Notes: generated by a model from the sequence alone, not told the origin. A DNA stretch of 64,000 bases from Eukaryota sp. TZLM1-RC (GCA_040285825.1 JAUPSS010000004.1:3142550-3206549), one strand, 5' to 3'. Positions 10,362 to 53,060 are shown, numbered from the stretch's first letter. Program-made: numbers and translations.

Positions 10362-10518
10362 AAAAAGAAAAAAAAGTATAGTACAAGATATAAAAAGTAC
10401 GTTCTTTTAAGATATTAAAAAAATCAAAAAGAATGAAAAGAATGAACATTAAACATTCTATCTCTAACCCTTAAAAAAACTGTTTCTATTTTGATTGATT
10501 GATAAATTGGCTGATTGA

Positions 10519-12756
10519 TTAGCCATTTTTCTTCATAAACGCTGATATTTGTGATTTTAAATCTTTTAAAGCATTATTTTTCTGCACGACTAAATTTGAA
10601 AGTCTTTGGTTTTCCACCAATAAACTATCAATTTTTGACTGATCTTCTTGTTGATTTTGACCTATCGACTTTTCTAAATGTTCCAACTTATCAAGAAATG
10701 ACATCACACTACCAACGACTGGATTAACCTTTAATACATCCAATTCAGATTGTAATTCAAAAACCCTTTGTTCTGAGCGAGCCCTCGCAATTTGAGCCTC
10801 ATTAAGCTTCTTTCTCAGTAGAGACAACTCGTTTTTGACCTCTAGTTGCACGACTTCTGCTGAATTTTCCATTTCTGTTAATGTTTTCGCATGATGTTCC
10901 CTCAGTCTTTTGATTTCTTCACAATAATGCTCCTTCACTTGGTTAACCCGTTCATCATACCTCATTTCACAAAGTCGTAAATCTCGTGTCGTCTCAGCTG
11001 TCTGGCCCCCAATCTGCTCAGTTAGTGTTTTAATTTGCGTATTTAGCAAACTTATTTTTGAATTTAATCCAGATACTTCTGTTTCACGTTCTCCAAGAGC
11101 TTGTTCTAACGACTGAATCCTCCTTTTTGAGCGTTCGTTTACTGAGTGGTAAGCGGAGTGAAGTTCATCTAGATCTTGACGTAATCTTCGAACAGTCTCC
11201 GAATCATCAGATACTTGCAATTCATCCAATCCATAAACTTGACATTCTTGGTTAATTTTTGATGGGGCAATCGATTTTGATTGATTAATTTTTGATTGAT
11301 TGGGTCTAGAGGTGTCTCTTGGTTTTGAGGTACTTGGCGCAGGTTGGGTGGCAGGTCTTCGTATTGGTTTTTCTTTTTCAGATAATTTTTTCTTCAGCAT
11401 TACAATTTGTGAATTTGCCGCAGCTAATTTAGTTTCTAATTCTCGAATTCTTTTCACCGAATAATTTTGTGGCACGGGATGCGATACTGCAGCTGGATCA
11501 GAATTTTCAAGACTTTTCAACGCATTTCTGAGCGATTCAATCATTTTATTGAGCTCATGCTTCTCCAGTTTGTGTTGTTCACTATTAATTTTAACTTGTT
11601 TTTCTGCATCTACTGCCCTCTTTTGAGCAACATCTAACTTACTACTCAGAGTATGAATTTCCTTATTTAAAGATTCATATCTATTTGTTTTAGTGGTTTT
11701 AAATTCAGAAATATTTTGCAAGAGTTTAGAATTTTCGGTTTTGAGGGAATTAATCTGAGCATCAAAGCGCTCCCGTTCTTGTTCGAAGTTGTAATTCATT
11801 CTATCAATAGTTAATCTTAATAATTCTTCTGTTTGTTTTAATTTGTTTAATTCTGATACTAATTCAAGTCTTTCTGTTTCTGCATCTTTTTGACCTCCAT
11901 TTTGAGCTATTCTTGAATTTTCCGTTGAATAGTGTGGATTTTGAGCTTGGCTTACCACTTGTTCTTGGGGGTCGAGTTGTTGTGGATTACCACATAAATC
12001 TTCTTGACTGGCTACTTCTGGTTCTACATCCTTTTGCAACGAAACTTCCTCAAATGCTTGTGATTCATTTTGGAGATTAATGCCTTTTTGAGCTTCTTTG
12101 TGACCTCGTAAAGCAGAATGTACCCTTTTTCTTGGTGAAACTGACACAAGATCAGGTTTTTTAGCTTGTAGTTCTTTCAGTTTTTCCAGTCGTGAAACAT
12201 CAAAATCGTTAGCTTCTTGCATTGTTTTCTCCTCTCCTCTCTCTTCTTCCTCAATCAAAACTTGAGCTTCATTCAGTCCTTCCTTCGCATCAAAGTTAGA
12301 GTTAGGGTTAGGGTTGGTTTGTGGTTGCTCAACTGCTAAAAGATTGTACTGAGAGAGCGGCTGTGAATCCTGGGAGATCCTAGCTTTGGAAAAGTCAGCG
12401 ATGGATGCAGAGATACTTGGTAAGGATGAAAGATTATCAGATGAGCCAAAAGTAGAGTTGTTGATGGTTGAATCTTGGGAAAGTAGAAGTCTGCGTTTAG
12501 GTTTAGGGTTATGGTTGGGTGTTTTGGAAGTAGGTCCTTTTTGGAGATTAGGTTTGATTGGAGAGCCCATGTCTGTACCGTCCTTGAGAACAGCTTCTCT
12601 AGCAAGTTCACCAGAAAGTTTGGATTCACGTGGAAGCTCAAGACTTGCTTCGGAGAGGGAAAGGTCTCCATTTAAGTTTTGAATAAAGTCATCACCAACA
12701 GAATTCTGAGCTGGATTAAGACGTTTAATAGGAGAGCTTTCAACGGGATCCTGCAT
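10519..12756 (-). CDS. Long coiled-coil protein, possibly CEP162-like centriolar protein
   Basis: Disordered N-terminus and heptad-rich C-terminus. The C-terminal pattern (YCEEIKRL..H; NPVVGSVMSFLDKLEHLE; QKNNALKDLKSQI) resembles the CEP162 C-terminus. Confidence 0.6.
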   Translation of the reverse strand: MQDPVESSPIKRLNPAQNSVGDDFIQNLNGDLSLSEASLELPRESKLSGELAREAVLKDGTDMGSPIKPNLQKGPTSKTPNHNPKPKRRLLLSQDSTINNSTFGSSDNLSSLPSISASIADFSKARISQDSQPLSQYNLLAVEQPQTNPNPNSNFDAKEGLNEAQVLIEEEERGEEKTMQEANDFDVSRLEKLKELQAKKPDLVSVSPRKRVHSALRGHKEAQKGINLQNESQAFEEVSLQKDVEPEVASQEDLCGNPQQLDPQEQVVSQAQNPHYSTENSRIAQNGGQKDAETERLELVSELNKLKQTEELLRLTIDRMNYNFEQERERFDAQINSLKTENSKLLQNISEFKTTKTNRYESLNKEIHTLSSKLDVAQKRAVDAEKQVKINSEQHKLEKHELNKMIESLRNALKSLENSDPAAVSHPVPQNYSVKRIRELETKLAAANSQIVMLKKKLSEKEKPIRRPATQPAPSTSKPRDTSRPNQSKINQSKSIAPSKINQECQVYGLDELQVSDDSETVRRLRQDLDELHSAYHSVNERSKRRIQSLEQALGERETEVSGLNSKISLLNTQIKTLTEQIGGQTAETTRDLRLCEMRYDERVNQVKEHYCEEIKRLREHHAKTLTEMENSAEVVQLEVKNELSLLRKKLNEAQIARARSEQRVFELQSELDVLKVNPVVGSVMSFLDKLEHLEKSIGQNQQEDQSKIDSLLVENQRLSNLVVQKNNALKDLKSQISAFMKKNG

Positions 12757-17337: not shown

Positions 17338-17645
17338 TAAAAAACCCAGCAATTGAAGCTCAATTGAGACTCAATTTTAATTGATTATATATTTTAAGAA
17401 AAGTATACAATGCTAAACATACCAAAACTACTATTGTTGAATCAGTTTGTCCCTTGTATGATGAACTTTAATAAATTTATAAAATTTTCAATAACCTTCT
17501 ATAGAAGATTCTCATGCTGACAATTTACGGGACAAACTTAAAAATTGCAAAAGAAATGAAGATCTGTGGATCAAATCACTTGATCCTACAATTCAACCAG
17601 CGCACAAAATAAATTTAGCACTACAAAAACCAGGATTGGTCTCCG

Positions 17646-19250
17646 ACTTAATTTACTTAAATGTGTTTTGTTATCGAATTCTCCAGTTTCCACAATAATT
17701 GATGATATTGAAATTCAAGCCAAATTATATTCAATTGATGCTATTCGTCATTTGGGTTCGTTTTTAGGAAATAATGATGAAATTACCAAAAAATTGTTTG
17801 AAAAGTTGAACTCAATTTCTGACAAAATTGACCGAATGATGAATTTAGATATAAAAAAACACATCAAATTTACCATTATAAGACTGTGTTTTAGTTCCAT
17901 TTTTAATCATATATTTCGATCTACAAATCCTCTCGTCACTAGACCTTTGGCTCAAAAGTTTAATGAGTTACGTGCAAAAGTTCTGTCTCAATTACTGGGA
18001 TGTAAAATGTTTCAAATTCCAGTTCATGCTTACCTTAGTCCACATTATGGTGGTTTAGGGTGGACGAAGGCTTCTATTCTTACCTCGTGTGCTTTTGTTG
18101 GTGGATGCAGAAATGCAATCTTTGAGTTTTCTGAAAGATTTGCAGATTGGAAAGATTTATTGATGACAACGCAAAGTTCCACTGTTTTTGCATTAAATGA
18201 AGAAATTTCAAGAATTGATGTAGAAAAATGGGGTCGATGTTTTCCCCAATCATTCAATGGCAATATTCCAGAAAAAAATGTTTTAAATTTGAAGTACACT
18301 CTTCGAACATTACAGAAAAGATTGAATGGAATGTATGAAAAAGATCTTTATAATAATGTTTGCAGCTCGGCTGTTTTAAATCAAGATCTTCACTCATTGT
18401 TATTGGAAAAAGGTGTTTGTGAAAACAAGTCGTCAGATTCTTCACTTTTTGTAACAATTGTACCACGAAGATTTGGATTGTGTGCCACTAATGAAGCATT
18501 TGTAACAAAAATGAGATTATATTTGAACATCCCCATTAACCAATTATTATCAAAAGAAAAATGTATTTGTTCGAATTCACCTCAACTCACTTTGCGCCAT
18601 GCTCTAAATTGCTCTAAATTGATAACTTATCGTTCTTCATTACATGATGCTGTTAGAGACACTGTTTTCCATATGGCACAAACTGCAAGGATATCGTGTA
18701 TCAAAGAGCCTCTGCTGAAGGGAACACTTTCTCTGAATAATTTTGGTTCTGATGATAGAGGTGATGTGTACTGTGATTGGATTGATAATTCTGAAGCTAT
18801 TGTTGACTTTGTCTCATGTAATGTTGCAAATGATACTTTGGTTCACAGAAGAAAACTTAATCCGGTGGCTGCTCTGGATTTTAAAGCAAAAGAGAAACAT
18901 AGAAAATATGATAAAGATATTGAAGAGGCAAATGTCGATAGAAATACCCAGCTGGTTTTTATTGCTTTCCCATTTTCGATAAATGGAAGATTATCAGTTG
19001 AAGCAGAAACTTTTTTGGATGACTTCCAAAAAATGGTGCAAGAAAAAACAATGAAAAGATTTGATATTTTTTATGGCGTTCACGGATTCAATTTGCCATT
19101 ATTAATAGATTACCGCGGTCTTTCAATCGAATTAGAGAAGCTTTAGCTAGTCAGCAAGCAAATCAAGATTTTGTAGAGGAAATCTTGGTTCAATGATAGT
19201 CGTCCCATTAGTTATGATTTAATTTAATCAAGTGTGCAAATTCAATAAAT
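17646..19250 (+). mobile_element. CRE-like non-LTR retrotransposon family A, 5'-truncated (RT thumb, CCHC, RLE)
   Basis: ORF 17668-19146: RHLGSFLG, NHIFRS, P.YGGLG, CICS..H..C, HDAVRD, RGD, KEKHRKY. One-base loss in the T-run near 19070 shifts the C-terminus. 3' UTR ends in AATAAA. Confidence 0.9.
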
Positions 19251-19329
19251 ACAATATTGTTCAAAAACCAGGATTTGGAATAAATAAAAAAATTTGTATA
19301 AGATTATTTACAAAAAGATTATTTATAAT

Positions 19330-30369: not shown

Positions 30370-31123
30370 AGGCTAGCAGCACAAAAATGTCAAATAGTTG
30401 TAACCCGTTGAAATTACTGGAAGATGAAGGTGAAATGAATTCTGGTTTTTGATCAGAATTTCTCGTTTTCTTTGAGCAGCAGTGAGCGTCTTCGATGTGA
30501 TTTCCTGTAGTTTTGTGTTCTTGCTTCCGTTCAGCGGAGGAGGATTTTGTTGTGAAGTCTAGCTTCTTTGTTTAGAATGTTTTTGTTTTTTTATTATGTT
30601 AATAAAACCTCTATTTCTGCCTTTCTTTATTCATGACGCCATTCGTCCCATTCTAATCTTGAATCTGTTGGGGTTGAATGTTGTGCGGTGAAGCTGTTGA
30701 AAATTTGGGCAATTTAATTTTCGTTTCCCAGCCATCAATTGGTCCCTAATGCCAGGGTCAATTACTGTGAAGGTAATATTGATCAGCTCAATTTGTGGAA
30801 GATTAGTCAAGTATGGATCTTTTTCACCTTTTTGGGGCTTCTTAAGGCGACTCTTCCAGGCTTTCTTTTTTCGTATAAGGTGTAAGGAGCAACTTACACC
30901 ATCAGTCCTTAAGGAAAAATTCTACTTTTGGAAAACCTTTTACCTGTTCGAAAAATCCATTTCCAATATTGATGTTGGAATTGTCCAATATTTTCTCTAA
31001 GAAGAGTTTCAGAATTTTTCGGGTAGTTGAATTGATCAGGGGTGAACATTCTTCATTCAGGGATCAACATTGGATTTGGTAACCAAGTTACAATGTAAAG
31101 TTTGGAACATTTTGTTTTTCAAC

Positions 31124-33700
31124 TTGCACACTTAATAAAATTAATTCATAACTAATGGGACGACTATCATTGAACCAAGATTTCCTCTACAAAATCTTGA
31201 TTTGCTTGCTGTCTAGTTAAAGCTTCTCTAATTGGATTGAAAAACCGAGGTAATCTATTAATAATGGGAAATTGAATCCGATAGCGCCTCAAAATAATAT
31301 CAAATCTTTTCATTGTTTTTTCTTTAACCATTTTTTGGAAATCATTCAAAAATGTTCCAACTTCTACTAATAGTCTTTCGTTTATCGAAAATGGGAATGC
31401 AATAAAAACAAGTGGTCTATTTCTATCAGCATTAGCTTCTTAGATATCTTTGTCATATTTTCTATGTTTGTCTTTAGCTTTAAATTCAAGAGCACTTGCA
31501 GGATTAAGTTTTTTCTTTGAACCAAAGTGTCATTTGCAACATTACAGGAAACAAAGTCAACAATACCTTCAGAGTTGTCAATCCAATCACAGTATACATC
31601 ACCTCTATCATCAGAACCAAAATTATTCAATGACAGTGTTTCCTTCGACAGAGGCTCTTTGATACACGATATTCTTGCAGTTTGTGCCATATTGAAAACA
31701 GTGTCTCTAACAGCATCATGTAATAAAGAACGATGAATTATCAATTTGGAACAATTCAGAGCATGACGTAAAGTGAGTTGAGGTGAATTTGAACAAATAC
31801 ATTGATCAATTGGCATATTCAAATATAATCTCATTTTTGTTACAGACGCTTCATTTGTAGCACACAGTCCAAATGTTCGTGATACAATGGTTACAAACAG
31901 TGAAGAATCTGATGACTGGTTTTCACAAACACCCATTTCCAATAACAATGAGTGAAGATCTTGATTTGAAACAGCCGAGCTGCATGTATTTTTATAAAGA
32001 TCATTTTCATACCTTCCTGTCAATCGTTTCTGATGTTCGAAGAGTGTATTTTAAATTTAAAAATTCTTTTCAGGATTATTACCATTGAATGATTGGAGAA
32101 AGCATCGACTCCACTTCAAATTATAATTGAAAATACTGCACTGAAAATTCAATTTTTGAAATTTCTTCATTTAATGCAAAAAAAAGTAGAAATTTGCGTT
32201 GTTATTAATAAATTTTCCGAATCGAAAAATCTTTCAGAAAACTCAAATATGGCATTTCATGAATGGCCAAACAAAACAAAAGATGTCCTAAAGGATCTTC
32301 TTGCTTTACACTACTTGATGATTTCAAAATAGAATTACCAACACGCAACTTAGAATTTGTGCAATATGCTGTTTGAAAATAAGGCATTAATTCTGGCAAA
32401 TGTTGTAACAAAGCACCTTGGATACTGCAACGACTATTTGAATTGATTGCATTGCTAAAATCCAACGACATACAAACAGTGGATTCATTTTGATGAAATA
32501 AAACATCTGTAGCAAATACTGCTGAAGAAACTCCATCTGTGGTATTAATTCCATATTGAAAGGGCAACAAATTTTTGCTTTTTCATTGAATCTATTTTTT
32601 AAGCAGCAAGCAGAAAAAATATTGTTTAAACTTTCAGAGACCACAATTAAACAAACATTCATTTTTGAGTTCTTTACAAGTGCCATCAAACGTGTATATC
32701 TTAATCCTTGAGGATATTTCAGATGACCAGTTGAAATTCTATTAAAAAATTTGGTGGATAAAACAAGACAATCCTAATGAAATAACCGTGGCTTTGATAT
32801 GATCAATCGAAAGCCCAGAAAGAACAGCAGACTTTCCGCGTGGTCTCCTTTTGATCACTGAAAACACCTCTGATGTCATCAATGGATGGCTTTCCCAATA
32901 GTCTCCATAATAACTTTGATCCATTATTGGGTTTTCAAATGGATGAAGAAGCTTGAGTTTATCTACAGTTTGTTGATTATTGGGAGCCTTGACTCCTGGA
33001 TTTCAAGTAGACAAAGCATTAGACCACTTGTTATCAAAGCATTTATCTTCAAAAATTTTGCTCAATTTCTCAGATGACAGTTTTCTTTGGCGCATTAGTA
33101 GTTATCTACAACATTTTCAACAAAATGATATTCAAAAGGAGCACAAAAAGTACCAAAAAATTCCCAAATATTGATAGCATACTTTCCCTTTCATAATTAA
33201 TGCAAAAATCTTTCAAAAACGAAGGCAAATTCATTGCATTTTGACGGATGTATTTCTTGTGGGGTTTTTATGGGAGAATGGTAATGATCGACTATTCGGC
33301 ATTTCAAACAAACCAACGATCAGCTGTTTTACCTTTTGAATTATTTCTGAAAGAAACATCGCATTTGTTACAAACTTTGTGTTTGATTCGATTGTTGACT
33401 GGTTTTGCAACAACTTGCGGAGGATAATTTATTGATTTTTCTTTATATTCTGTCCTTCTAGTAAATTTTTTTTGCATTATGTTCAGAATTTGCAACATCA
33501 TTATTTCCAACAGTCGTTCGAGCATCATGTCAACATAGCATAAAACTGATGTCTAACTGTTATCTAATATTAAATTTGCAATTAAAGAAATGGTTCAAAT
33601 TGATCAGCTGTTCACAACAACAAATCAAATCATTTGACACACTGCATGACCACAGAAAACACCTCATTCTTAGGGCAGTTGTCCATTAATGGTCATTGAA
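31124..33700 (-). mobile_element. Near full-length, heavily decayed CRE-like family A element
   Basis: Fragments in order: Cys-rich N-terminus, PRGKSA.LSGLSIDH (RT0), PFQYGI, SLDFSNA.NS, VKQEDPLG, CCHC, RLE and conserved 3' UTR; many stops and indels. Confidence 0.8.
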
Positions 33701-34065: not shown

Positions 34066-35168
34066 TGATGCCGTTAGGCAGATGAACACACGAAGGAGAG
34101 AGAGAAATCTCTTGTTTATTAATAAAACTGATTCATAAATGAGTATCACGTCATCAGTCGAAATACAAAGAAACCTACTAATTCAATTTGAGTTCAACAA
34201 CAACACTACTTTTTCCCACTTTTCTGAGGACAAATACAGTACTGGCTCAATAGAGGGAAGATATGGGGTTTGTTAAACTCTTTGGTGCATCGTTTGTGTG
34301 ACACAAATAATTTACCTCATGTTTGATTTTAGATGGACAATCACGGGAGATGTGTCCAGGCTTGTGGCACTTGAAGCACAATTGATTTTTTAAATCCTGA
34401 AAGCGCCAAGAGGACCTCGTTTTAGTGCCAGCCGTACGTTCCACATCATTCACTGAGGTTTTGAAACCACGAGTCCATGAAGCAACCCTAGAGCAGTCCA
34501 ACAGCTCATCAGTAGTGGTTTCGACAAGAGAGTGAAGATCTGGGAATACATCATCTCGAATTCTCGCTAGTAGAGAACGTTGAAGACCTACGGGAAGAAT
34601 TCCTCTGGCAAATCGATTCAGAAAAGCTGTGTCTGGTAACTTCAGTCCGGAAGCCCTACTCTTTACCTGGAGGAAACGTCGCAGGTAACAGGACATACGT
34701 TCTCGGACGTCACCAATACGGACATCAAGCTTCAGTTCTGACATAGCCAGACTAAAATCTTCGTACGTGGCGAACGATACGACAGATTGTAGATGTCTGA
34801 GAAGAACATCGTCACTGGAAGAGACGTCGGATTTCTGGAGAGATAGGGACTCTAACAGAAAAGAATCGACCAAGAGTCTTGCTGGAACAAGCTCTTTCTT
34901 AGAAGTCACAGAAGAATAGATCTTCCACTCTTGTAGGAACAAGAGAACACTTTCAACTTTCATGGAAGAAAGAGACGGGAGGTTGACAGAAGGAACAGTC
35001 ATCTGAAATAAGAAGGGCCAATAATTATTGATGCCGTTAGGCAGATGAACACACGAAGGAGAGAGAGAAATCTCTTGTTTATTAATAAAACTGATTCATA
35101 AATGAGTATCACGTCATCAGTCGAAATACAAAGAAACCTACTAATTCAATTTGAGTTCAACAACAACA
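34066..35168 (-). mobile_element. Gag-only LTR mini-retrotransposon, family 1, intact copy
   Basis: Identical 140-bp TG...CA LTRs (34066-34205, 35029-35168), 4-bp TSD TAAA, PPT GGGAAAAAGTAG, single ORF. Confidence 0.93.
34247..35002 (-). CDS. gag: Gag-like protein with CCHC zinc knuckle (Ty3/gypsy-like)
   Basis: 251 aa; capsid-like MSCYLRRF...RFARGI; CFKCHKPGHISRDC. No PR/RT/IN follows. Confidence 0.85.
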   Translation of the reverse strand: MTVPSVNLPSLSSMKVESVLLFLQEWKIYSSVTSKKELVPARLLVDSFLLESLSLQKSDVSSSDDVLLRHLQSVVSFATYEDFSLAMSELKLDVRIGDVRERMSCYLRRFLQVKSRASGLKLPDTAFLNRFARGILPVGLQRSLLARIRDDVFPDLHSLVETTTDELLDCSRVASWTRGFKTSVNDVERTAGTKTRSSWRFQDLKNQLCFKCHKPGHISRDCPSKIKHEVNYLCHTNDAPKSLTNPISSLY

Positions 35169-40371: not shown

Positions 40372-43300
40372 TTTATTGAATTTGCACACTTGATTAAATT
40401 AAATCATAACTAATGGGACGACTATCATTAAACCAAGATTTCCTCTACAAAATCTTGATTTGCTTGCTGTCTAGCTAAAGCTTCTCAAATTCGATTGAAA
40501 AACCGCGGTAATCTATTAATAATGGCAAATTGAATCCGTGAACGCCATAAAAAAATATCAAATCTTTTCATTGTTTTTTCTTTCACCATTTTTTGGAAGT
40601 CATCCAAAAAAGTTTCTGCTTCAACTGATAATCTTCCATTTATCGAAAATGGGAAAGCAATAAAAACCAGCTGTGTATTTCTATCGACATTTGCATCTTC
40701 AATTTCTTTATCATATTTTCTATGTTTTTCTTTTGCTTTAAAATCAAGAACATTCACAGGATTAAGTGTTCTTCTGTGAACCAAAGTATCATTTGCAACA
40801 TTACATGAGACAAAGTCAACAATAGCTTCAGAATTATCAATCCAATCACAGTATACATCACCTCTATCATCAGAACCAAAATTATTCAGAGAAAGGGTTT
40901 CCTTCAGCAGGGGCTCTTTGATACACGATATCCTTGCAGTTTGTGCCATATTGAAAACAGTGTCTCTAACAGCATCATGTAATGAAGAAACTTAAGTTAT
41001 CAATTTAGAGCAATTTAGAGCATGGCGCAAAGTGAGTTGAGGTGAATTCGAACAAATACATTTTTCTTTTGATAATAATTGGTTAATGGGGATGTTCAAA
41101 TATAATCTCATTTTTGTTACAAATACTTCATTAGTGGCACACAATCCAAATCTTCGTGATACAATAGTTACAAAAAGTGAAGAATCTGACGTCTTGTTTT
41201 CACAAACACCCTTTTCCAATAACAATGAGTGAAGATCTTGATTTAAAACAGCCGAGCTGCAAATATTATTATAAAGATCTTTTTCATACATTCCAGTCAA
41301 TCTTTTCTGTAATGTTCGAAGAGTGTACTTCAAATTCAAAAGATTCTTTTCTAGAATATTGCCATTGTGATGCCGTTAGGCAGATGAACACACGAAGGGG
41401 AGAGAGAGAAATCTGAGTTTATTAATAAAACTGATTCATAAACGAGTATCACGTCATCAGTCAAAATACAATGAAACCTACTAATTCAATTTAAGTTCGA
41501 CAACAACACTACTTTTTCCCATTTTTCTGAGGACAAATACAGTACTGGCTCAATAGAGGGAAGATATGGGGTTTGTTAAACTCTTTGGTGCATCGTTTGT
41601 GTGACACAAATAATTTACCTCATGTTTGATTTTAGATGGACAATCACGGGAGATGTGTCCAGGCTTGTGGCACTTGAAGCACAATTGATTTTTTAAATCC
41701 TGAAAGCGCCAAGAGGACCTCGTTTTAGTGCCAGCCGTACGTTCCACATCATTCACTGAGGTTTTGAAACCACGAGTCCATGAAGCAACCCTAGAGCAGT
41801 CCAACAGCTCATCAGTAGTGGTTTCGACAAGAGAGTGAAGATCTGGGAATACATCATCTCGAATTCTCGCTAGTAGAGAACGTTGAAGACCTACGGGAAG
41901 AATTCCTCTGGCAAATCGATTCAGAAAAGCTGTGTCTGGTAATTTCAGTCCGGAAGCCCTACTCTTTACCTGGAGGAAACGTCGCAGGTAACAGGACATA
42001 CGTTCTCGGACGTCACCAATACGGACATCAAGCTTCAGTTCTGACATAGCCAGACTAAAATCTTCGTACATGGCGAACGATACGACAGATTGTAGATGTC
42101 TGAGAAGAACATCGTCACTGGAAGAGACGTCGGATTTCTGGAGAGATAGGGACTCTAACAGAAAAGAATCGACCAAGAGTCTTGCTGGAACAAGCTCTTT
42201 CTTAGAAGTCACAGAAGAATAGATCTTTCACTCCTATAGGAACAAGAGAACACTTTCAACTTTCATGGAAGAAAGAGACGGGAGGTTGACAGAAGGAACA
42301 GTCATCTGAAATAAGAAGGGCCAATAATTATTGATGCCGTTAGGCAGATGAACACACGAAGGAGAGAGAGAAATCTCTTGTTTATTAATAAAACTGATTC
42401 ATAAATGAGTATCACGTCATCAGTCGAAATACAATGAAACCTACTAATTCAATTTAAGTTCGACAACAACAATTGAATGATTGGGGAAAACATCGACCCC
42501 ATTTTTCTACATCAATTCTTGAAATTTCTTCATTTAATGCAAAAACAGTGGAACTTTGCATTGTCATCAATAAATCTTCCCAATCTGCAAATCTTTCGGA
42601 AAACTCAAAGATTGCATTTCTGCATCCACCAACAAAAGCACACGAGGTAAGAATAGAAGCCTTCGTCCACCCTAAACCACCATAATGTGGACTAAGGTAA
42701 GCATGATCTGGAATTTGAAACATTTTACATCCCAGTAATTGAGACAGAACTTTTGCACGTAACTCATTAAACTTTTGAGCCAAAGGTCTAGTGACGAGAG
42801 GTTTTGTAGATCGAAATATATGATTAAAATTGGAATTAAAACACAGTCTTATAATGGTAAATTTGATGTGTTTTTCATATCTAAATTCATCATTCGGTCA
42901 ATTTTGTCAGAAATTGAGTTCAACTTTTCAAACAATTTTTTGGTAATTTCATCATTATTTCCTAAAAACGAACCCAAATGACGAATAGCATCAATTGAAT
43001 ATAATTTGGCTTGAATTTCAATATCATCAATTATTGTGAAAACTGGAGAATTCGATAACAAAACACATTTAAGTAAATTAATTCGGAGACCAATTTTGGT
43101 AAATAATTCTTTAAAACATACAGTTGCTTTTTTCACAATATTTAAATCACCAATAAGCACAACCTTATCCATATATGCAATCATTTTTAGTGAAGGAAAC
43201 ATCTCTTGAATTTGCAGTAGAATAGGATGAATGGCCAAACAAAACAAAAGAGGTCCTAACGGATCTCCTTGCTTTACGCCACTTGAGGAACTCAAAATGT

Positions 43301-43452
43301 TGTTACCAAAATGTAAATTAGAATATGTGCAATAAGTTGATTGAAAATATGGTATTAATTCCGGCATATATTGCAATAGAGCACCATGGATACTGCGACG
43401 ACTTAGTGAATTGAAAGCATTACTAAAATCCAATGACATGCAAACATTGGAT
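40372..43452 (-). mobile_element. CRE-like family A, 5'-truncated within RT, interrupted by the LTR element at 41368-42471
   Basis: SLDFSNAFNSLSR, GVKQGDPLGPLLFCLAIH, AYMDK, YGGLG, CCHC, RLE and 3' UTR. The sequence resumes exactly across the insertion. Confidence 0.92.
41368..42471 (-). mobile_element. Gag-only LTR mini-retrotransposon, family 1, copy 2 (gag has two nonsense changes near 42230)
   Basis: LTRs 41368-41508 and 42332-42471 (a few differences), TSD ATTG, same PPT; internal region near-identical to copy 1. Confidence 0.93.
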
Positions 43453-43489
43453 GTAGAGTGTGTATGTTAAATTCAAATATCTTTTTAAT

Positions 43490-43725
43490 ATTTCAAATAT
43501 TTTTTTTCAGGAAGATTACCATTGAGTGATTGTGAAAGCATCAATTCTATATTTCTGTATCAGTCTTTTGACATTTTTTTCATTTAATGCTAAAGTAGTT
43601 GAACTTTGGGTTGCCATTTATAAATCTCCCTGAGTAGTTCAATATAACATTATTACGTCGACCAACAAAAGCACATGAAGTAACAATAGGGTCTTTAATC
43701 CAACCTAAACAACCATATTGTGGAC
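43490..43725 (-). mobile_element. Older CRE-like family A fragment
   Basis: Diverged match to 18040-18300 (YGCLGWIK..CAFVG..SSTTLALNE..SLNGNLPEK). Confidence 0.6.
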
Positions 43726-44677
43726 ATTTCTGTTGCACATCAACGAATGTGTATCAATGAAGGGAAATTTTCTTCATCTTCTTTTTCCAAGTTATCGGTA
43801 TATTATAGAGGGAGTTGTGGGTAGATTCCGCACCATTGTAATATATTCTTTAGTATAATGTCACATTGGTTCATATTATAAACTTTATGACAATTTCCAT
43901 ATTCTGACATTTTTCATTCGTAATTCAAATTTTACATTTATTGTACAGGTTAAATTCCTTCCATTAGGAAAAATGGTGACGGAACTACATTTTTGCAGAA
44001 AGAATGTAGTGAATGTTCACAATGCAATGAAAGAAAACTCAAGTCGAGTCAAGGAACACATGGAGTATGAGTCAGATACTATAAAGATTACGGGTGGTGT
44101 GCCTGATTTTGAGAAAGGTTCAAATTTATTGACAGTGTTGATGTTAGAAGGATATACAATCACAATTTCAAGAAGGTTAATAGTGGACCAATTATCACTG
44201 GTACATAGCTTATTAACACTAATTATTACAACCCAAGCCATCTCATTTGGATCTATCATCGAAATTAATAATAATAATAAAAACCACGCAGAAAAATTTA
44301 GTTTCTTATGTGTTTTAGTTTGTTTTGTTTTAATTTGATTCTTTATATAAATGGTTTAATGAAAACCACGCAGAAAATAAATTTATGATAAACAAAAAAC
44401 AAAAAACTAACTAATCACCTTCATGAAGCTCCGAGGTTCTCTCATATTGAACAACCTCTTCTTCTCGCATATCAATAGTAATATGTTCTATAGATAATGG
44501 TATTTTATTGAAATATGACTAACAGTGGACCAATGCAATAGGAATATTTGAAACAAATAATTCAAACGGGTTCTATAGATTATAATTGGTGGAAAACTGG
44601 AAATCATTACAGAGACCATGAATAGCAGTTAATTCATAATTTAAAAATCAATAATACAAATAATTAAAATTAAAATC

Positions 44678-45380
44678 AAAACATGCGGTTGAGATTAGGG
44701 ATGTATCCAAGTGGTCTTTTGGATAATTCTGTTTGTATTTGTAACGAAAAACCTACTGCCAATTTCCGTCATATTGTTAGTTCTAAGAAATTTCTTCAAT
44801 ATTGGTCAGATCTTCATAATGCCGTTCGTGATGTGACATATGAGATGTTCAAGTGTTACACTTTTAGTTGCAAAGTAGAACCGTTGTTGAAGCATTATAG
44901 CGATAATAATCTGTTTAATTCCCGTCGAGGTGATTTAATTGCTCCTTTTGTGGATTCCTCTCAAGTTGTTGTTGATTTTACTACAGTTGATTTCTTTGCT
45001 TTTATTTATCGTGATGATGTTTTACTTAGTTTTGATGGTCATTTAAACAAGCCTGAAGATCGTAAGAGAGATAAATATACTGAGATATTAAATGATTTAA
45101 ATAAGAATCTTTACTCGAAGTTTTCGTTTGTTCCTTTTGCCTTTTCGATTTTTGGCAACATTGGACAGTCCGCCTTGAATTTTATCAATGATTTTGGTAA
45201 TTTATCTCGTTCAAGTGGTAAGAATTTTGCAGGGAATTTATGGAAGAATCGTATCATTTTCGCTTTGTACAGAAGTGTTCCCAAGTACTTGAGTTTAATG
45301 ATGTAGAAGCTGTATAAAGATTCATCAAGAGTTGGCGTGGAGAATTTTGTTTCTTATGTGTTTTGTTATGTTTTGTTATT
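44678..45380 (+). mobile_element. CRE-like family B, 5'-truncated (CCHC + RLE + 3' end)
   Basis: CIC..H..HNAVRD, EPLL, RRGDL, VVVDFT, KRDKY, FVPFAFSIFG. Confidence 0.85.
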
Positions 45381-46014
45381 TTTTTTAATTTTGGAATTAA
45401 TATACATGATAAAAAACAATATTCTGAAGAACAATCACTTTCATCAACGAATTGGTGTTCAATACAACATCGTATCCCAGGCAAAATACCCTTTTGAGAC
45501 TTTGATGATAAAGTGATGAGAATCATGTGATTGATGGGAAAATTCGCCATACTAGTATCGCAAAGAGAAAATTAACAGAAAAAATTAAATGAAATGAAAT
45601 TTCTTGACTGGACTTATTAATTGTTTCATTATTGATGAGGGAAATTTATTGACTACTAAGCAAAACAACTGATCAAGAGCAGCAGTTGCTGGAGCTATTT
45701 ATAATTGGTGTTTCTCGAAATCTCTTCTGCTATGAAGAACCATTATTGGGCTAATTCTACAATAGACTTTGTTTGGTTATTCATAAATGAAAGCTGGTGA
45801 GTTATCTGAACAATTCTCAGTTAATGTGAAGGGTTTTAACAGAATCCATTCTGCAAATTTTCTTTGATCATTGTGTTTCATTGTGGAATCGTGCATAGGG
45901 GTTCAGTAATCATGTGTAGAGGAAACTATGTAGAAACTTGACCGCTTTCAGGAGAGAAATAAAATGTGACATATCAAAAGTACAATGAATAGAAGAAACA
46001 ACAAAACTAAATAT

Positions 46015-47506
46015 TTATACAAAGAAAATGTCTCTAATTAAAGAATTTGCAGTGACTACAGACGCAACAATAGCAATATAAATAATTAAATAAGCAAAAA
46101 TAGGTTTTGAAAAGAAAGAAGAAAATCTATTCTTCCCAGTAATTTTTGAATTCCACAAAGAAATACAACGTTCCCTGCTACTTAAATGGAGCATGGCAGG
46201 AATTGCCAAAGCTATAAAAAAACCCGTAAGTCCCCCAAATGATAAAATTGTTGACAACTTTCTTGCAAATACAGCAATAGCCAGAGCAGGAATGGAAAAA
46301 GCCAATAAACAGAAAACGCGAATTTTCTTCATTCTAGATTCAGCCATATACTCCCGCTTATGAGGAGGACATACGCTCTCGTAAATATTGTTCCCCAAAG
46401 TGATTGCGTTGATAGGGAAGGCACTCAGACAGACTATTGGGACAAATAAAACCACTAATTGTCTAACAACACTCCCCCACCAAGGAGTGGTATCATACCC
46501 CCAAGGATAAGATTTCCACATTAGAGAGAGTAGTTCACCTGTATCCTTACCAAAATAGAGGACAGAGGTTGTACAGAGGAGGATATAAGTGACTGTGAGC
46601 AAAATAACTACACTACGAAGGGCCTTCCTGATCTTTTTCTTATTGTTGAGAGGTGCGACTAAACCAGGAAGGGAGTGATGGCCAATGTTTGCAAAGAAAA
46701 GTGTGGGAATAAGCACACCTAGGTTCTGAAACTGCCAATCCGGAACGGTTTGCACATGGGGAGAGATCGACACTGGGAAGGGTTTCATGAAGATAGCAAT
46801 GGTGACAGTAATAATACATATAATGAGTACGAGGTAACGGTAGACTGTGAAGGCGGATTGAATTAATCCCTGTCCACTGAGACCTACAAGGGTGAGAATA
46901 ATGACGAGCACGGCGTAAATGGAAAGGAAAACAAGGTAAGCATGGAAACAATTTGAAGACCAAGTGGAGTTGTTGGAATTACATTCTCCCCAGTCAGTAA
47001 GATATGGAACAGCAAAGTTAGTCATGAGAGAACCGGCACTTGTGCTCGCATAAGAAATTAAAGCTGAGATCATGTACATAGATATGGCTATTTGGTAACA
47101 AAACTTCCACTTAGAACCAAGAAAGAGTTCTACAAGATGAGGCAGCTCAATAAGGTTAGATGACAGTGGTAACATACTATTTACGAGAACCAATTTCAAA
47201 TTTGACACGCGAGTCAACGAGACTAGAAGAAAGTTGACCCTCTAGAATATCATTTAAGGCATCAGCACGTGCCATGGCTTCAGCAAGATACATAAAGGCG
47301 ATGTACGAGATGAGTCCAACCAATACACATGTGATGATAGAAAGGCGAATACCCGCGATAGAGAAGCTATGAGGAAGGCCAAGAACACCAGTTCCTATAA
47401 TGTAATTAGTGGTTAAGCATCCAAAGACGAACGCAGAATAAGACTGCTTTTTCGATTTGTCCACGATGGTGCCATCAAAGATGAGACGTTCATCGTTGAC
47501 TGACAT
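46015..47506 (-). CDS. Amino-acid transporter (Aa_trans/AAAP, TMEM104-like); two exons, intron 47150-47177
   Basis: NYIIGTGVLGLP.SF, EAMARA, FEI..K.EL..LVELFLG, HHSLPGLV.P, SAFPINAITLGNN; many hydrophobic segments. A 28-nt intron restores the frame. Confidence 0.8.
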
Positions 47507-47599
47507 GTTGGCGCCGTTAGGTGAAATTCGGATAAACAGACTAATTTGTTGAATTAAGACTTTCGAAGAACTAACAGAAATTTCAACTGATTGTTTTGG

Positions 47600-47745
47600 T
47601 AAAATGGAATTGTGTTTTCTATTTTTAAGGGGATGTTGAAGATGGTTTCTGATGCTTTGCTTTCTCTTGGATCTCACTATGCGAAAGTTGCATTTAGTTG
47701 TTTTGTTTTGGGAGAGATGGATTATTTAGATGTTGATTTATAAGT
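47600..47745 (+). mobile_element. CRE-like 3' end (family D), second copy at 50585-50712 (-)
   Basis: IVFSIFKGMLKMVSDALLSLGSHYAKVAFSCFVLGEMDYLDVDL*. Confidence 0.6.
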
Positions 47746-47793
47746 TTTCGAATAAATAAATATATTCAAAAAAATTTGTTAAATTATAGTCAA

Positions 47794-48408
47794 TTTATTG
47801 AATTTGCACACTTGATTAAATTAAATCATAACTAATGGGACGACTATCATTAAACCAAGATTTCCTCTACAAAATCTTGATTTGCTTGCTGTCTAGCTAA
47901 AGCTTCTCTAATTCGATTGAAAAACCGCGGTAATCTATTAATAATGGCAAATTGAATCCGTGAACGCCATAAAAAAATATCAAATCTTTTCATTGTTTTT
48001 TCTTTCACCATTTTTTGGAAGTCATCCAAAAAAGTTTCTGCTTCAACTGATAATCTTCCATTTATCGAAAATGGGAAAGCAATAAAAACCAGCTGTGTAT
48101 TTCTATCGACATTTGCATCTTCAATTTCTTTATCATATTTTCTATGTTTTTCTTTTGCTTTAAAATCCAGAGCAGCCACAGGATTAAGTTTTCTTCTGTG
48201 AACCAAAGTATCGTTTGCAACATTACATGAGACAAAGTCAACAATAGCTTCAGAATTATCAATCCAATCACAGTATACATCACCTCTATCATCAGAACCA
48301 AAATTATTCAGAGAAAGTGTTTCTTTCAGCAGGGGCTCTTTGATACACGATATCCTTGTAGTTTGTGCCATATTGAAAACAGTGTCTCTAACAGCATCAT
48401 GTAATGAA
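47794..48408 (-). mobile_element. CRE-like family A, 5'-truncated (RLE + 3' UTR)
   Basis: Near-identical to 40372-40985. Confidence 0.9.
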
Positions 48409-48475
48409 TTTGAATACTTTTTAGCAAAAAGAAGAATCACCTTTCTTCTGGATGAATTTTTATTGATCTAAAATA

Positions 48476-48596
48476 CTATCTAATATTCAATATCCTCCAA
48501 ACAAGCATAACAATTACTTAACCTACTCACTGCATTTCGTTCATATTGTACACCAATAGCTAACAGAAGTTTAGAAATCATTGTTGGAATAGACTG
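48476..48596 (-). mobile_element. CRE-like 3' end (family E)
   Basis: Repeat of 14903-15025. Confidence 0.55.
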
Positions 48597-49480
48597 GATT
48601 TTTTAACCATTTTATTCCACCAGGAAAATAAACAACAAAATTAAAATTCTAAATCTTTATATCCCAAATAAGCCAAAACCAATTGAATGGTAGTTTTCCC
48701 TTTATAAAAACGACTCAGAAATTAAGGGACAACACCTTTAAAGATTGGAAAAAAAGACTAAGAATGCAAACAAAAATTCTATTTAACCTGAAAGCAAAAG
48801 TCAATCTTTTACGAGATCTGTTTTGAGTATTTGAATTGTTGAAGAAACCTTACAGTAAATTTTACTCCATGTGTGGTAGTTTTCATGATACAAATTTGAG
48901 AATGGAAAAGCAGAAAAAATGAATGATACCAAAAGCAACCATAGTGAAAAACCCAAATAATACATTGTTGTTGACTAGCAAACAACAAATACGAAACGAA
49001 AATATATACGAAATTCACACTGAAGAGTATTCACAGTATGAAAACATTGGTTACGCCTGAAATCGGCTCATTCATTCAAATACCAAGAGTCACAGACCAT
49101 AAGTGCAACACTTTGTTCTGTTATTCAATCACACCATCATGTCACAGCAATTATTTGAAGTAGAACTAATGAAAATCACTTCTGTTCTTTTGAATGATCT
49201 TAGTATCAGCCTACTATAGCAGCAATTGTTGTATTTTTGTTTGTTAGATTGCGAAATATGCATAAATTCTGTAGATCACGCCACATTAATTGCTGCAAAC
49301 ATTCACACTGTGTTGTCACCTTTCTCCCACAGAAAACCATTCTGCAATGGTGGATGATGTGCTTGAAATACAAAGTGTTTAATGGAGGGCAGAGGTAAAT
49401 TCTTCTCTTTTTTCGATCTCTGATTTATATGTATGTCTCTCAACCACTCTTATCAGAGTAGTCTCCTTCATTATTAAGAA

Positions 49481-50407
49481 ATGAGTCAGGAATCATCTGT
49501 TTTAGCTTGCTCTCCCGAAGATATGCAAAAGTTTTTGATGTGTGACACCCATCTCGGTGCCAAAAACCTTGGTAAGGGAATGGAATCATACATCTATACC
49601 CGTGCTCCCTCCGGTCATCACATCATCAACCTTGCCGACACCTGGGACAAGTTAATCCTTGCTGCCAAAATCATTGTTGCCGTTGACAACCCAAAAGATG
49701 TAGTCATTGTGTCTAGCTCTGAATACGGCCAACGTGCTGCTCATAAGTTTGCCAGATTCACTGGTGCTTCCGCCATTGCTGGACGTTGGACCCCTGGTTC
49801 TCTTACTAACTATGTTCAAAAAGAATTTATCGAACCCCGTGTAATTGTTGTCACCGATCCTATTCAAGATCATCAAGCTATTACTGAGGGATCCTATGTC
49901 AATATTCCTGTTATAGCTCTTTGCAACACCGATACTCCCCTTCGCTTTGTTGATGTTGCTGTTCCTTGCAATAACAGAAGTCAGAAGTCGGTTGGTTTCA
50001 TGTACTGGCTTTTGTGCCGTGAAGTTTTAAGAATGAGAGGTGCCATTGCTAGAACCGCTGAGTGGGAAATCATGCCTGATCTCTTCTTCCATCGTGGTGA
50101 AGCCGAAAAGGAACAAGAAGAACTCCAGAGACTTTCCGCAGAAGCAGTTCACGATCAACCCACCGCTATGCCCGATGCTCCTGTTGTTGGATCAGAAGGT
50201 TTCGCTTTAGCTGCACCTGAAGAATTCGACTTTGGTGCCGCTAACACTGGTAACTGGGCTCCTGATACCTCTGCTGGATGGGGTGAGGCTCCCACTGAAC
50301 AACCATCTGCTTGGGATGAGGCTCCCACTGAACAACCATCTGCTTGGGGTGAAGCTCCCACTGAACAACCATCTGCTTGGGGTGACTCATCTACTGCTTG
50401 GCAATAA
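49481..50407 (+). CDS. RPSA: 40S ribosomal protein SA (uS2/Rps0)
   Basis: [73 protein letters not shown]. Confidence 0.97.
50279..50385 (+). repeat. 33-nt tandem repeat (3 copies) encoding W(G/D)EAPTEQPSA in the RPSA tail
   Basis: Directly visible in the sequence. Confidence 0.9.
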
Positions 50408-50584
50408 ATTTCCAACTAGTTCTAGTTTGCTTTAAGTATTGACTTTCCCTTCACACTTTAATTTTTCAGTCATTCTGAAATAAAAATCTTGACTATCATT
50501 TGTTTCTGTCACACCGTAAGATATCATTAACGTGATCATTTACAGAAGTTTTTTTGAAAAAAAAACTAAATTTATTAAACAACT

Positions 50585-50712
50585 TATAATTCAACATTTA
50601 AATAATACATCTCTCCCAAAACAAAACAACTAGATACAACATTCCCATAGTGAGATCCAAGAGAAAGCAGAGCATCAGAAACAATTTTCATCATCCCCTT
50701 AAAAATAGAATA
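50585..50712 (-). mobile_element. CRE-like 3' end (family D)
   Basis: Reverse-complement repeat of 47600-47745. Confidence 0.6.
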
Positions 50713-50830
50713 CAATACTGATGATGCTAATACTAAGGAAATATGTCAAACGAACAGTGAGATTGCTGTTTATTTTGTTCATTCTCAAATAACACCTTCA
50801 TTGCAAATAACACCTTGTTATAGAGAATAT

Positions 50831-51807
50831 ATTTATTGAACATGTACACTTAATTAAATTAACTCATAACTAATGGGACGACTATCATTGAACCAAGATT
50901 TCCTCTACAAAATCTTGATCTGCTTGCTGTCTAGCTAAAGCTTCTCTTATTCGATTGAAAAACCGAGGTAATCTATTAATAATGGCAAATTGAATCCGAG
51001 AACGCCATAAAAAAATATCAAATCTTTTCATTGTATTTTCTTGCACCATTTTTGGAAGTCATTCAAAAAAGTTTCTGCTTCATCTGATAATCTTCCATTT
51101 ATCGAAAATGGGAAAGCAATAAAAACCAGCTGTGTATTTCTATCGGCATTAGCCTCATCAATATATTTATCATACTTTCTATGTTTGTCTTTTGCTTAAA
51201 AATCAAGAGCAGCCACAGGATTAAGTTTTCTTCTGTGAACCAAAATATCATTTGCAACATTACATGAGTCAAAGTCAACAATAGGTTCATAACTATCAAT
51301 CCAATCACATTAATCATCACCTCTATCATCAGAAGCAAAATTATTCAATGACAGTGTTTCGTTCGGCAGAGGCTCTTTGATACACGATATTCTTGCAGTT
51401 TGTGCCATATTGAAACAGTGTCACTAACCGCATCATGTAATGAAGAACGATAAGTTATCAATTTCGAACAATTCAGAGCATGACGTAAAGTGAGCAGAGG
51501 TGAATTCGAACAAATACATTGATTAACGGGGATATTTCAATATAATCTCAATTTTGTTACAAATGCTTCATTAGTGGCACACAATCCAAATCTTCGTGGT
51601 ACAATGGTTACAAAAAGTGAAGAATCTGATGACTTGTTTTCACAAACACCCTTTTCCAATAACAATGAGTGAAGATCTTGATTTTAAACAGCCGGGCTGC
51701 TTATATTATTATAAAGATCATTTTCATACATTCCAGTCAATCGTTTCTATAATGTTCGAAGAGTGTATATTAAATTTAAAAGATTCGTTTCTGGAATTTT
51801 GCCATTA
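50831..51807 (-). mobile_element. CRE-like family A, decayed, ending at the LTR element insertion
   Basis: Collinear with 40372-41367, with frameshifts. Confidence 0.88.
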
Positions 51808-52896
51808 TGATGCCGTTAGGCAGAAATACCAAAGAAGTAAAGAGAGAAAAGCCTTTGTTAATAGAAATACTTGTTTTTGAACAAGTGCCACGTCATCATG
51901 TAAATTCCTCATCTGTCTAGCAAGTTAGTTAATCAGTAACAACAACACTACTTCTTCCAATTTTCTTTCAACAGTTTCGTGAACCATTCAGCAAAATGAA
52001 GAAAGGGGATTTGTGAGATACTGAGGCACGTGGCGTAAATGATTGACTTCGTGCTTAACTTTTGAGGGGCAATCACGAGCTAGATGACCTTTCTGGTGAC
52101 ATTTGAAACATGTTCATTCAGTCAAATTGCGAGACCTATGGGATGAACGAGACTTCATACCAGCTTGACGCACAGAGTCGGTATTTTCAGAAACAGTCTA
52201 TGAAGACCTGTTCCAAGAAGCTACCCGCATGCAATCAAGTAGTTCATCCTCTGCGGTATTTACCAATGTAGGAAAATCGGGGAATACCTCATCCCGAATT
52301 CGAGAAATCAGAGATTTCTGCAATCCTAATGGAAGAATACCCTTGGCGAATCTGATCATAAAGGCTGAGTCAGGCAGTTTCAGTCCGGAAGCCCTGCTTT
52401 TCGCCTGAAGAAAACGTCTCAGGTAGCAAGACATACGTCGCCCTTACGGACATCAACCTTCAACTCAGACATCACCAAGTTGAATTCCTCGTACGAGGGA
52501 AACAAGGTGGAGGATCTTAAATGATCCAGAAACACCTCATCGGATGAATCGACCCCAGGTCTTGTGAGAACCAATGATTCTAACAAGAAGGGGTCAACGA
52601 GGAGCCTTGCTGGAACAAGGTCCTTTTTCAGTGTAACAGAAGAGTACACCTTCCACTGTTGTAGGAACAACAGAACATCATCCACTTCCATAGAAGCAAG
52701 GGACGGATGTAGTACGTGTGTAGATATCATCTGCAATGAGGGCCAATAATTATTGATGCCGTTAGGCAGAAATACCAAAGAAGTAAAGAGAGAAAAGCCT
52801 TTATACTTAATAGAAATACTTGTTCTTGAACAAGTGCCACGTGATCATGTAAATTCCTCATCTGTCTAGCAAGTTAGTTAATCAGTAACAACAACA
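51808..52896 (-). mobile_element. Gag-only LTR mini-retrotransposon, family 2 (gag frameshifted, with stops)
   Basis: LTRs 51808-51947 and 52754-52896 (TG...CA), TSD ATTA, PPT GGAAGAAGTAG. Gag is homologous to family 1, including CFKCHQKGHLARDC and LTNPLSSFC*. Confidence 0.9.
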
Positions 52897-53060
52897 ATTA
52901 AAAATAGAGAATGTATTAAATCATGTATTGGAATTCAAGCCGAACGCAAATCATAAAAATATGATGTAACGAAATTGATAGCTAATACTGATAGAAAGAG
53001 GCAACCCATCATCTTTTATTTATTTTATTATATTTTATTATCTAAATTCCCCCAGTAATC

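Follow-up and report, generated by a model that had tools for sequence, protein, structure and literature searches.

Independent insertions of two gag-only LTR element families at one nucleotide of an R2-like LINE in a metamonad genome

How can two copies of a retrotransposon each have received an element of a different long terminal repeat (LTR) family at exactly the same nucleotide, with both inserts pointing the same way? The question is raised by a 64,000-nucleotide stretch of DNA (hereafter the window, in whose own numbering unlabelled coordinates are given) from contig JAUPSS010000004.1 of the assembly GCA_040285825.1, which represents Eukaryota sp. TZLM1-RC, a free-living metamonad protist (Skoliomonas) with a compact genome of ~32 Mb in 16 contigs. 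The window carries three 1.1-kb LTR elements, A1 and A2 of family A and B of family B, together with at least 10 copies of a host repeat, a long interspersed nuclear element (LINE). A2 lies in the LINE copy H40 and B in the LINE copy H50. In the genome paper the words 'retrotransposon' and 'LTR' do not occur, and transposons are not described there (PMC11316075). A preliminary description of the window had proposed that one retrotransposon is guided to another, which it uses as a safe harbour and thereby inactivates. The analysis reported here confirmed that A2 and B represent independent events in which members of two families entered the identical LINE nucleotide in the same orientation; dedicated targeting of that nucleotide is not supported.

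The sequences to the left of A2 and of B could be aligned position by position as far as the insertion (...GAATATTGCC-ATTG at A2 and ...GAATTTTGCC-ATTA at B), in keeping with the common position that had first been noticed. A2 occupies 41368-42471 on the minus strand, between copies of the target-site duplication (TSD) ATTG at 41364-41367 (left) and 42472-42475 (right). B occupies 51808-52896, also on the minus strand, between copies of ATTA at 51804-51807 (left) and 52897-52900 (right). The TSD copies are identical within each site and differ between the two sites. The common insertion point, hereafter site 1, corresponds to residue 295 of the LINE protein P0070 (..FPQSFN|GNIPEK..), between the reverse transcriptase (RT) domain and the CCHC/endonuclease part. 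At A2 and at B alike, the minus strand encodes the Gag as well as the LINE open reading frame (ORF), and therefore each insert has the orientation of its LINE. The 3' part of H40 (40372-41367, minus strand, with the LINE 3' end at 40372) matches residues 295-606 of P0070 at 92%; its 5' part (42472-43460, minus strand) runs into the RT domain, matches residues 160-408 of protein P0098, and is 5'-truncated at ~43460. H50 (50830-51811, minus strand) is 982 bp long, 5'-truncated and ~90% identical to H17 and H40.

Site 1 is empty in three further LINE copies of the window, as the preliminary description had it. H17 (17629-19258, plus strand) is 5'-truncated and contains a 492-aa ORF at 17668-19146; its two arms, I1 and I5, overlap by exactly the 4-bp TSD at 18255-18258, where a single CAAT is present. 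H31 (31106-32966, minus strand) is an older copy, at 84%, with its empty site at ~32087-32093, and H43 (43490-43725, minus strand) is a diverged fragment, at 72%, with its empty site at ~43518-43521. The statement that the host copies are closely similar holds for H40 and the empty H17, which are 96-98% identical, but not for H50, which reaches only ~90% with either of them. A 5' truncation common to H17 and H40, as a segmental duplication would produce, was considered and excluded, as H40 extends into the RT domain and only H17 is truncated there.

H40 and H50 were recognized as separate LINE insertions because their flanks and 5' ends differ, because H50 has a target duplication of its own (ATAGAGAAT, at 50820-50828 and 52904-52912), different from that of H40, and because the two are not sisters on a tree. 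In this maximum-likelihood tree, built from 14 copies of the LINE, H40 belongs to a young group with three empty copies, H17 and those at loci L010 and L011, and H50 falls outside that group (support 94/92); the filled LINEs are thus not monophyletic, and the independence of the two insertions, suggested earlier, stands. The alternative to independence is one ancestral insertion: the filled LINE would have been copied, by duplication or retrotransposition, and the element inside it would later have been converted to A in one copy and to B in the other. Such recombination could be seeded by the identical blocks that families A and B have at their LTR ends and primer site, a clustered patch of differences between the A2 LTRs hints at recombination or conversion, and joint copying of B and its LINE piece as one unit is conceivable, given that the LINE target duplication encloses both. 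Against it stand the nearest relatives of H40, which are empty at 96-98% identity, the different flanks, 5' ends, LINE target duplications and TSDs (ATTG and ATTA), and the divergence of the elements themselves, which are 64% identical whereas their LINE flanks are 90% identical. A single insertion followed by duplication is rejected because the hosts are separate and the tree places H40 among empty copies; the tree and the empty paralogue largely refute this whole line of explanation, which we regard as very improbable.

The preliminary description had cautioned that LINE sequence does not clearly resume after 52900. This was borne out, and is explained by the 5' end of H50, which lies 0-3 nt past the insertion of B; the target duplication of H50 encloses B. 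Recombination between LTRs, or a deletion, as the cause of the missing LINE sequence is excluded by this enclosing duplication. Both LINE copies that were hit had already been 5'-truncated and dead, H50 at 982 bp and H40 ending inside the RT domain at ~43460. No active LINE was therefore disabled by either insertion, and the idea of a hyperparasite that inactivates LINE copies fails.

A2 and B are bona fide gag-only LTR elements of two distinct families. The LTRs of A2, at 41368-41508 and 42332-42471, are 95% identical, and the element runs from TG to CA; those of B, at 51808-51947 and 52754-52896, are 96% identical. The gag gene of A2 contains a premature stop (220-aa ORF at 41550-42212), and that of B is split into pieces of 119, 78 and 42 aa. 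A1 (34066-35168, minus strand) is young, with identical LTRs, a TSD of TAAA and an intact Gag of 251 aa. It is 98% identical to A2, and lies in DNA without LINE homology, in agreement with the earlier remark that this copy occupies an unrelated site. B is 64% identical to A1 and A2. That the elements share little more than their termini was likewise found: the stretches common to families A and B are the LTR termini (the first 10 and last 17 bp) and, in addition, a primer-site block beside the 5' LTR (ATAATTATTGGCCC). The element interior of ~820 bp (823 bp) contains a sole ORF, which encodes a Gag of 251 aa with a zf-CCHC domain (PF00098, E 4e-6). No further Pfam family was matched in the interior, and this single Gag ORF comes without protease, RT or integrase.

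Further copies were reached through the annotated Gag proteins of GCA_040285825.1, and flanks were then extracted for every element; solo LTRs and decayed copies fall outside such a Gag-based sample. Family A supplied 10 further independent insertions and family B 6; these 16, together with A1, A2 and B, make 19. A tandem array at L015 was left out of the counts on account of its mismatched outer flanks (CCAG and TGAG), and neither L016, which is the window itself, nor L012, which overlaps L003, was counted as an extra insertion. LTR pairs of 140-143 bp, reading TGTTGTTG...GGCATCA in the gag sense, are present in 19/19 elements, and the 4-bp duplications are perfect in 18 of the 19 insertions, the copy at L014 having one mismatch. 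A2 and B are each 97-99% identical to their own family mates at unrelated sites; for B, the family-B copies at L009, L010, L011 and L018 give 96-97%. The LTR pairs of A2 (95%) and B (96%), set against 99-100% in most family mates, indicate that both insertions are older than most of their mates.

The LTRs of A2 have three lineage-specific changes in common, and the LTR beside the 3' part of the LINE has seven more differences, mostly in one patch. The 823-bp interior of A2 is 99.3% identical to that of A1. The patch, set against this conserved interior, suggests recombination, conversion or a template switch and not simple ageing.

The host is best described as an R2-like LINE of the restriction-like endonuclease (RLE) type that is not site-specific, and on sequence grounds the label 'CRE-like' used before appears fair. 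The upstream part of its ORF encodes a reverse transcriptase (Pfam RVT_1, PF00078, in P0068 and P0098), for which R2 proteins were the top matches in the PDB (E 3e-5). C-terminal to the RT, the motifs CxCx11Hx3C, RGD...D-x-V and KxxKY were read by eye in the 492-aa ORF, a region in which Pfam models gave no match. The copies have a common 3' end and varied 5' truncation points, and several have target duplications of 9-14 bp. Eight LINE 3' junctions in the window abut unrelated A/T-rich DNA, and a single specific target sequence of the R2/CRE/NeSL kind was not found at these eight. The assignment to R2-like RLE LINEs without site specificity follows from the R2 matches, the Cys/His and endonuclease-like region, and the unrelated insertion sites. 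The family is very abundant: LINE ORF clusters have 148, 94, 80, 52, 49, 37 and 34 members, and the 3' 1.63 kb of the LINE occupies 12% of the window and 5.4% of a further 330 kb of sampled sequence. Proteins related to this LINE and to the Gags also occur in Skoliomonas sp. GEM-RC1 and TZLM3-RCL.

Is site 1 then a dedicated target? Such a model would have an integrase or a tethering protein recognize the LINE stretch as a safe harbour. The agreement in nucleotide and orientation between two families with common LTR termini would fit it, as would the ~25-30% of insertions that fall in this LINE family; in addition, the only flank common to both sites is the one on the LINE 3' side, where a bound factor could act. 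In the wider sample, however, none of the 16 further insertions is at site 1 (95% upper bound 17%), so that the site accounts for 2/19 insertions, and 12/19 lie outside this LINE family, those at L003 and L005 in other LINE families. The share of insertions in this LINE family is about a quarter to a third. Four of the 16 further insertions entered it, at three positions other than site 1 and in both orientations. Numbered from the first base of H17, these are a family-A insertion at position ~1449 (L008, in LINE orientation), family-B insertions at ~1446 (L009) and ~341 (L014), both opposite to the LINE, and a family-B insertion in the RT, ~1.2 kb upstream of position 1 (L010, in LINE orientation).

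A target motif common to the insertions was not found either: the top 7-mer occurs in 4/16 sites, a level that a shuffle null reaches in 33% of trials, and the symmetrised target profile holds at most 0.3 bit per position, with a weak A/T preference in the middle of the duplication. A 12-nt match between site 1 and the target at L019 (ATCATTCAATGG, with a 7-nt offset) was tried as a motif and dropped, as k-mer permutation shows no enrichment. At the protein level, 113 of the 252 LINE proteins of the family read through site 1 uninterrupted. No ending that reads into an LTR was observed among the 252 LINE proteins, with the exception of the window's own 89-aa ORF ending in ..SFNCCCRT, and none of 29 short ORF representatives passes from LINE into LTR (..SFNCCC, or ..SFN then stop). 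No Pfam targeting domain was found in the integrase tails of the two Gypsy elements examined, and the LINE copies that were hit had no activity left to lose. Sequence- or protein-guided targeting of site 1, put forward in the preliminary description, is not supported by this comparison. The flanks of further copies, the material it had named for deciding the matter, show no enrichment at the coordinate in any of the 16 cases, and the sampled sites largely do not concentrate on it. A dedicated targeting device is accordingly judged improbable.

The sample revealed a second coincidence. The insertions at L008 (TSD ATGG) and L009 (TSD TTTA in the LINE sense) are 3 bp apart, and their duplications overlap by one base. 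L008:8874-10936 comprises two tandem family-A units in the orientation of the LINE, and L009:9797-10895 is a family-B element opposite to it. This site 2 falls in the codons ..KRFDIF.., at position ~1446-1452, ~180 bp from the LINE 3' end. In simulations based on the observed coverage of LINE copies, two of three random LINE insertions fell no more than 3 nt apart with P = 0.016, and five insertions yielded two such pairs with P = 0.0009. Uniform site choice within the LINE is therefore disfavoured (p ~0.02 for the independent second pair), and site choice is probably uneven.

These figures bear directly on pure chance, a model in which insertions fall on LINE DNA at an even density and two of them happen to coincide because the LINE family absorbs so many. 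Chance is helped by the missing target motif, by the 0/16 further insertions at site 1 and by the selection of the case post hoc from a genome-wide scan. It is helped as well by numbers: among ~25 simulated LINE insertions, the probability of a pair at the same nucleotide and in the same orientation is 0.11, and that of a pair no more than 3 nt apart is 0.8. It is opposed by the second pair, sampled independently and 3 bp apart (the 0.016 above), by the two tight pairs among five insertions (0.0009), and by the closeness of A2 and B, within 10 kb of each other, which under a uniform genome-wide model is far rarer than 0.11. Pure chance appears rather unlikely on this balance.

Overall, the explanation that we favour, and hold to be somewhat probable, is ordinary integrase-mediated nesting with local hot spots in a multi-copy LINE target. 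Members of families A and B would integrate throughout the genome, with 4-bp duplications and a weak A/T-rich preference, and would have entered, independently, two dead, 5'-truncated copies of an abundant R2-like LINE. Insertions would survive in harmless repeat DNA, of which this LINE would be the commonest target and possibly also a preferred one. Within the LINE, a few positions would be locally favoured, perhaps owing to the shape of the DNA, the placing of nucleosomes or a protein bound there. As these positions recur in hundreds of near-identical LINE copies, their repeated use would come to notice as insertions at equivalent nucleotides. A more specific version, in which the integrase has nucleotide-level hot spots in the 3' half of the LINE, at least two in number (residue 295 and the KRFDIF codons), set by DNA shape, a nucleosome or a LINE-bound protein, is put forward tentatively, as a possibility.

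Several points weigh against nesting at hot spots. The uniform model gives P = 0.11 for a pair at the identical nucleotide and in the same orientation among ~25 LINE-borne insertions genome-wide, so that chance may account for the first pair taken alone; the value disregards the A2-B spacing of ~10 kb, which makes chance less likely. Relative to its local density, the LINE is only weakly enriched in insertions (3/16 against 5.4%, P = 0.05), and the enrichment is lost (P = 0.25) if selection closes half of the DNA to insertion. The hot spots are deduced from two pairs, with only 5-6 insertions sampled in the LINE family; that they, and not pure chance, lie behind the coincidence is what we infer, as is their physical cause. 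Finally, B adjoins the 5' end of its own LINE copy (0-3 nt), a second coincidence that nesting at hot spots does not explain. The sampled LINE 5' ends cluster at positions 516-725, which puts the chance of this adjacency at perhaps a few per cent.

Families A and B would probably borrow the same integrase and RT, because their LTR termini and primer-site block are common to both. The Gypsy element in L008 was examined as the autonomous partner and rejected: its LTR ends differ, and there is no LTR pair inside the locus. At L018:6389-6446, right after the stop of a Gypsy pol gene, lies a short sequence, available in a single copy, that starts with TGTTAG and ends with GTCATCA/CACGTCATCA. It resembles the LTR ends of the gag-only elements (TGTTGTTG...CGGCATCA) and is not identical to them. 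On the strength of this resemblance, the L018 Gypsy may point to the donor of the integrase. In the two Gypsy pol genes examined, neither of which is an established partner of A or B, the C-terminal tail of the integrase gave no Pfam match to a chromodomain or to another targeting domain.

How do these elements compare with known systems? TR-GAG elements are non-autonomous LTR retrotransposons of plants that encode only Gag (PMC4350172). Like them, A and B are short, with TG...CA LTRs, a target duplication, a single CCHC Gag ORF and no pol, so that their enzymes would come from another element. Unlike the plant elements, they are much smaller (1.1 kb, with ~140-bp LTRs) and reside in a metamonad protist; the likeness is one of structure. 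The host LINE resembles R2, CRE and NeSL in its single ORF with an RT, in having R2 as its best solved relatives, and in its C-terminal Cys/His and endonuclease-like region, as well as in its often 5'-truncated copies and its 9-14-bp target duplications. Unlike the site-specific R2 or CRE, it occupies many unrelated A/T-rich sites.

Among LTR retrotransposons with defined targets, Ty3 inserts at start sites of RNA polymerase III (Pol III), Tf1 beside Sap1-bound sites, and Ty5 and chromoviruses in heterochromatin. A bound protein or a chromatin mark can steer an integrase to within a few nucleotides, and the same nucleotide is repeatedly hit by Tf1 and Ty3. In those systems most insertions are at the defined target, whereas only 2/19 A and B insertions are at the coordinate and 12/19 are outside the LINE family; neither a common motif nor a fixed distance of the Ty3, Tf1 or chromovirus kind was observed for A and B. 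Pol III targeting of LTR retrotransposons has been reviewed (PMC5911963).

Another parallel is the nesting of plant LTR elements, whose insertions into other retroelements are non-random and favour certain parts of them (Jedlicka et al. 2019, PMC6911290). There, sequence preference was reported to be weak, effects of chromatin and nucleosomes were proposed, and insertion was at positions harmless to the host element (PMC6911290). The present case agrees with it in that nested insertions favour certain regions with a weak sequence preference. It differs in its host, its genome and its scale: the plant study concerns LTR-element hosts in large plant genomes and a regional (3' UTR, untranslated region) preference, whereas here a LINE is the host, in a compact 32-Mb protist genome, and the coincidence is at the nucleotide level and involves few events.

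What the locus offers depends on which explanation holds. If the hot spots are true, hundreds of near-identical LINE copies would constitute a natural multi-copy reporter of the site preference of an LTR integrase, one retroelement would, in the compact genome of a little-studied metamonad, offer another a landing place that is used repeatedly and predictably, and a simple system would be at hand to ask what sets integration without a strong sequence motif. If chance is responsible, the lesson would be one of caution: a repeat family that absorbs many insertions will show occasional identical-site hits, which are not proof of targeting. Relative to the pair described earlier, the LINE share of insertions and the second A/B pair near the LINE 3' end are new here.

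Further observations concern site 2 and the repeats around the insertions. The KRFDIF spot coincides with a polymorphism in the length of a T-run, which switches the frame of the LINE C-terminus (..DIFLWRSRIQ.. or ..DIFYGVHGFN..). P0100, whose ORF ends in ..KRFDIF, was examined as a third insertion at site 2 and set aside; a point mutation that created TGA accounts for the ending, and site 2 is unoccupied. In P0256 (P9112_004122, on JAUPSS010000003.1), the LINE ORF ends in ..KRFDIFL followed by a stop, as in the LTR-interrupted copy at L009; this could be a third insertion at site 2 or a TGG-to-TGA mutation. At 40965-40977 and 18645-18657 of the window, and in other LINE copies, the antisense strand of the LINE has TCTAACAGCATCA followed by TG, with 11/13 bases matching the LTR end CCTAACGGCATCA, a match that is probably due to chance.

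Duplication and tandem arrangement are recurrent among these repeats. L008:11124-14403 consists of three head-to-tail units of 5'-truncated LINE (positions 536-1627 in each, 1.09 kb), a small tandem array. A family-A insertion in another LINE family is present at L003:2652-3754 and 7909-10937 (and L012), duplicated with ~5 kb of flanking DNA, one copy having expanded to a three-unit tandem with common LTRs. The array at L015:4417-11851 contains at least nine family-A units, whose internal LTRs are without the last 18 nt. Finally, a third family, which is B-like (78% identical), is represented by a solo LTR in two inverted copies with identical flanks, at L006:6801-6942 and 11736-11879; the pair brackets a family-A element and an RT fragment, and represents an inverted segmental duplication within a transposon nest.

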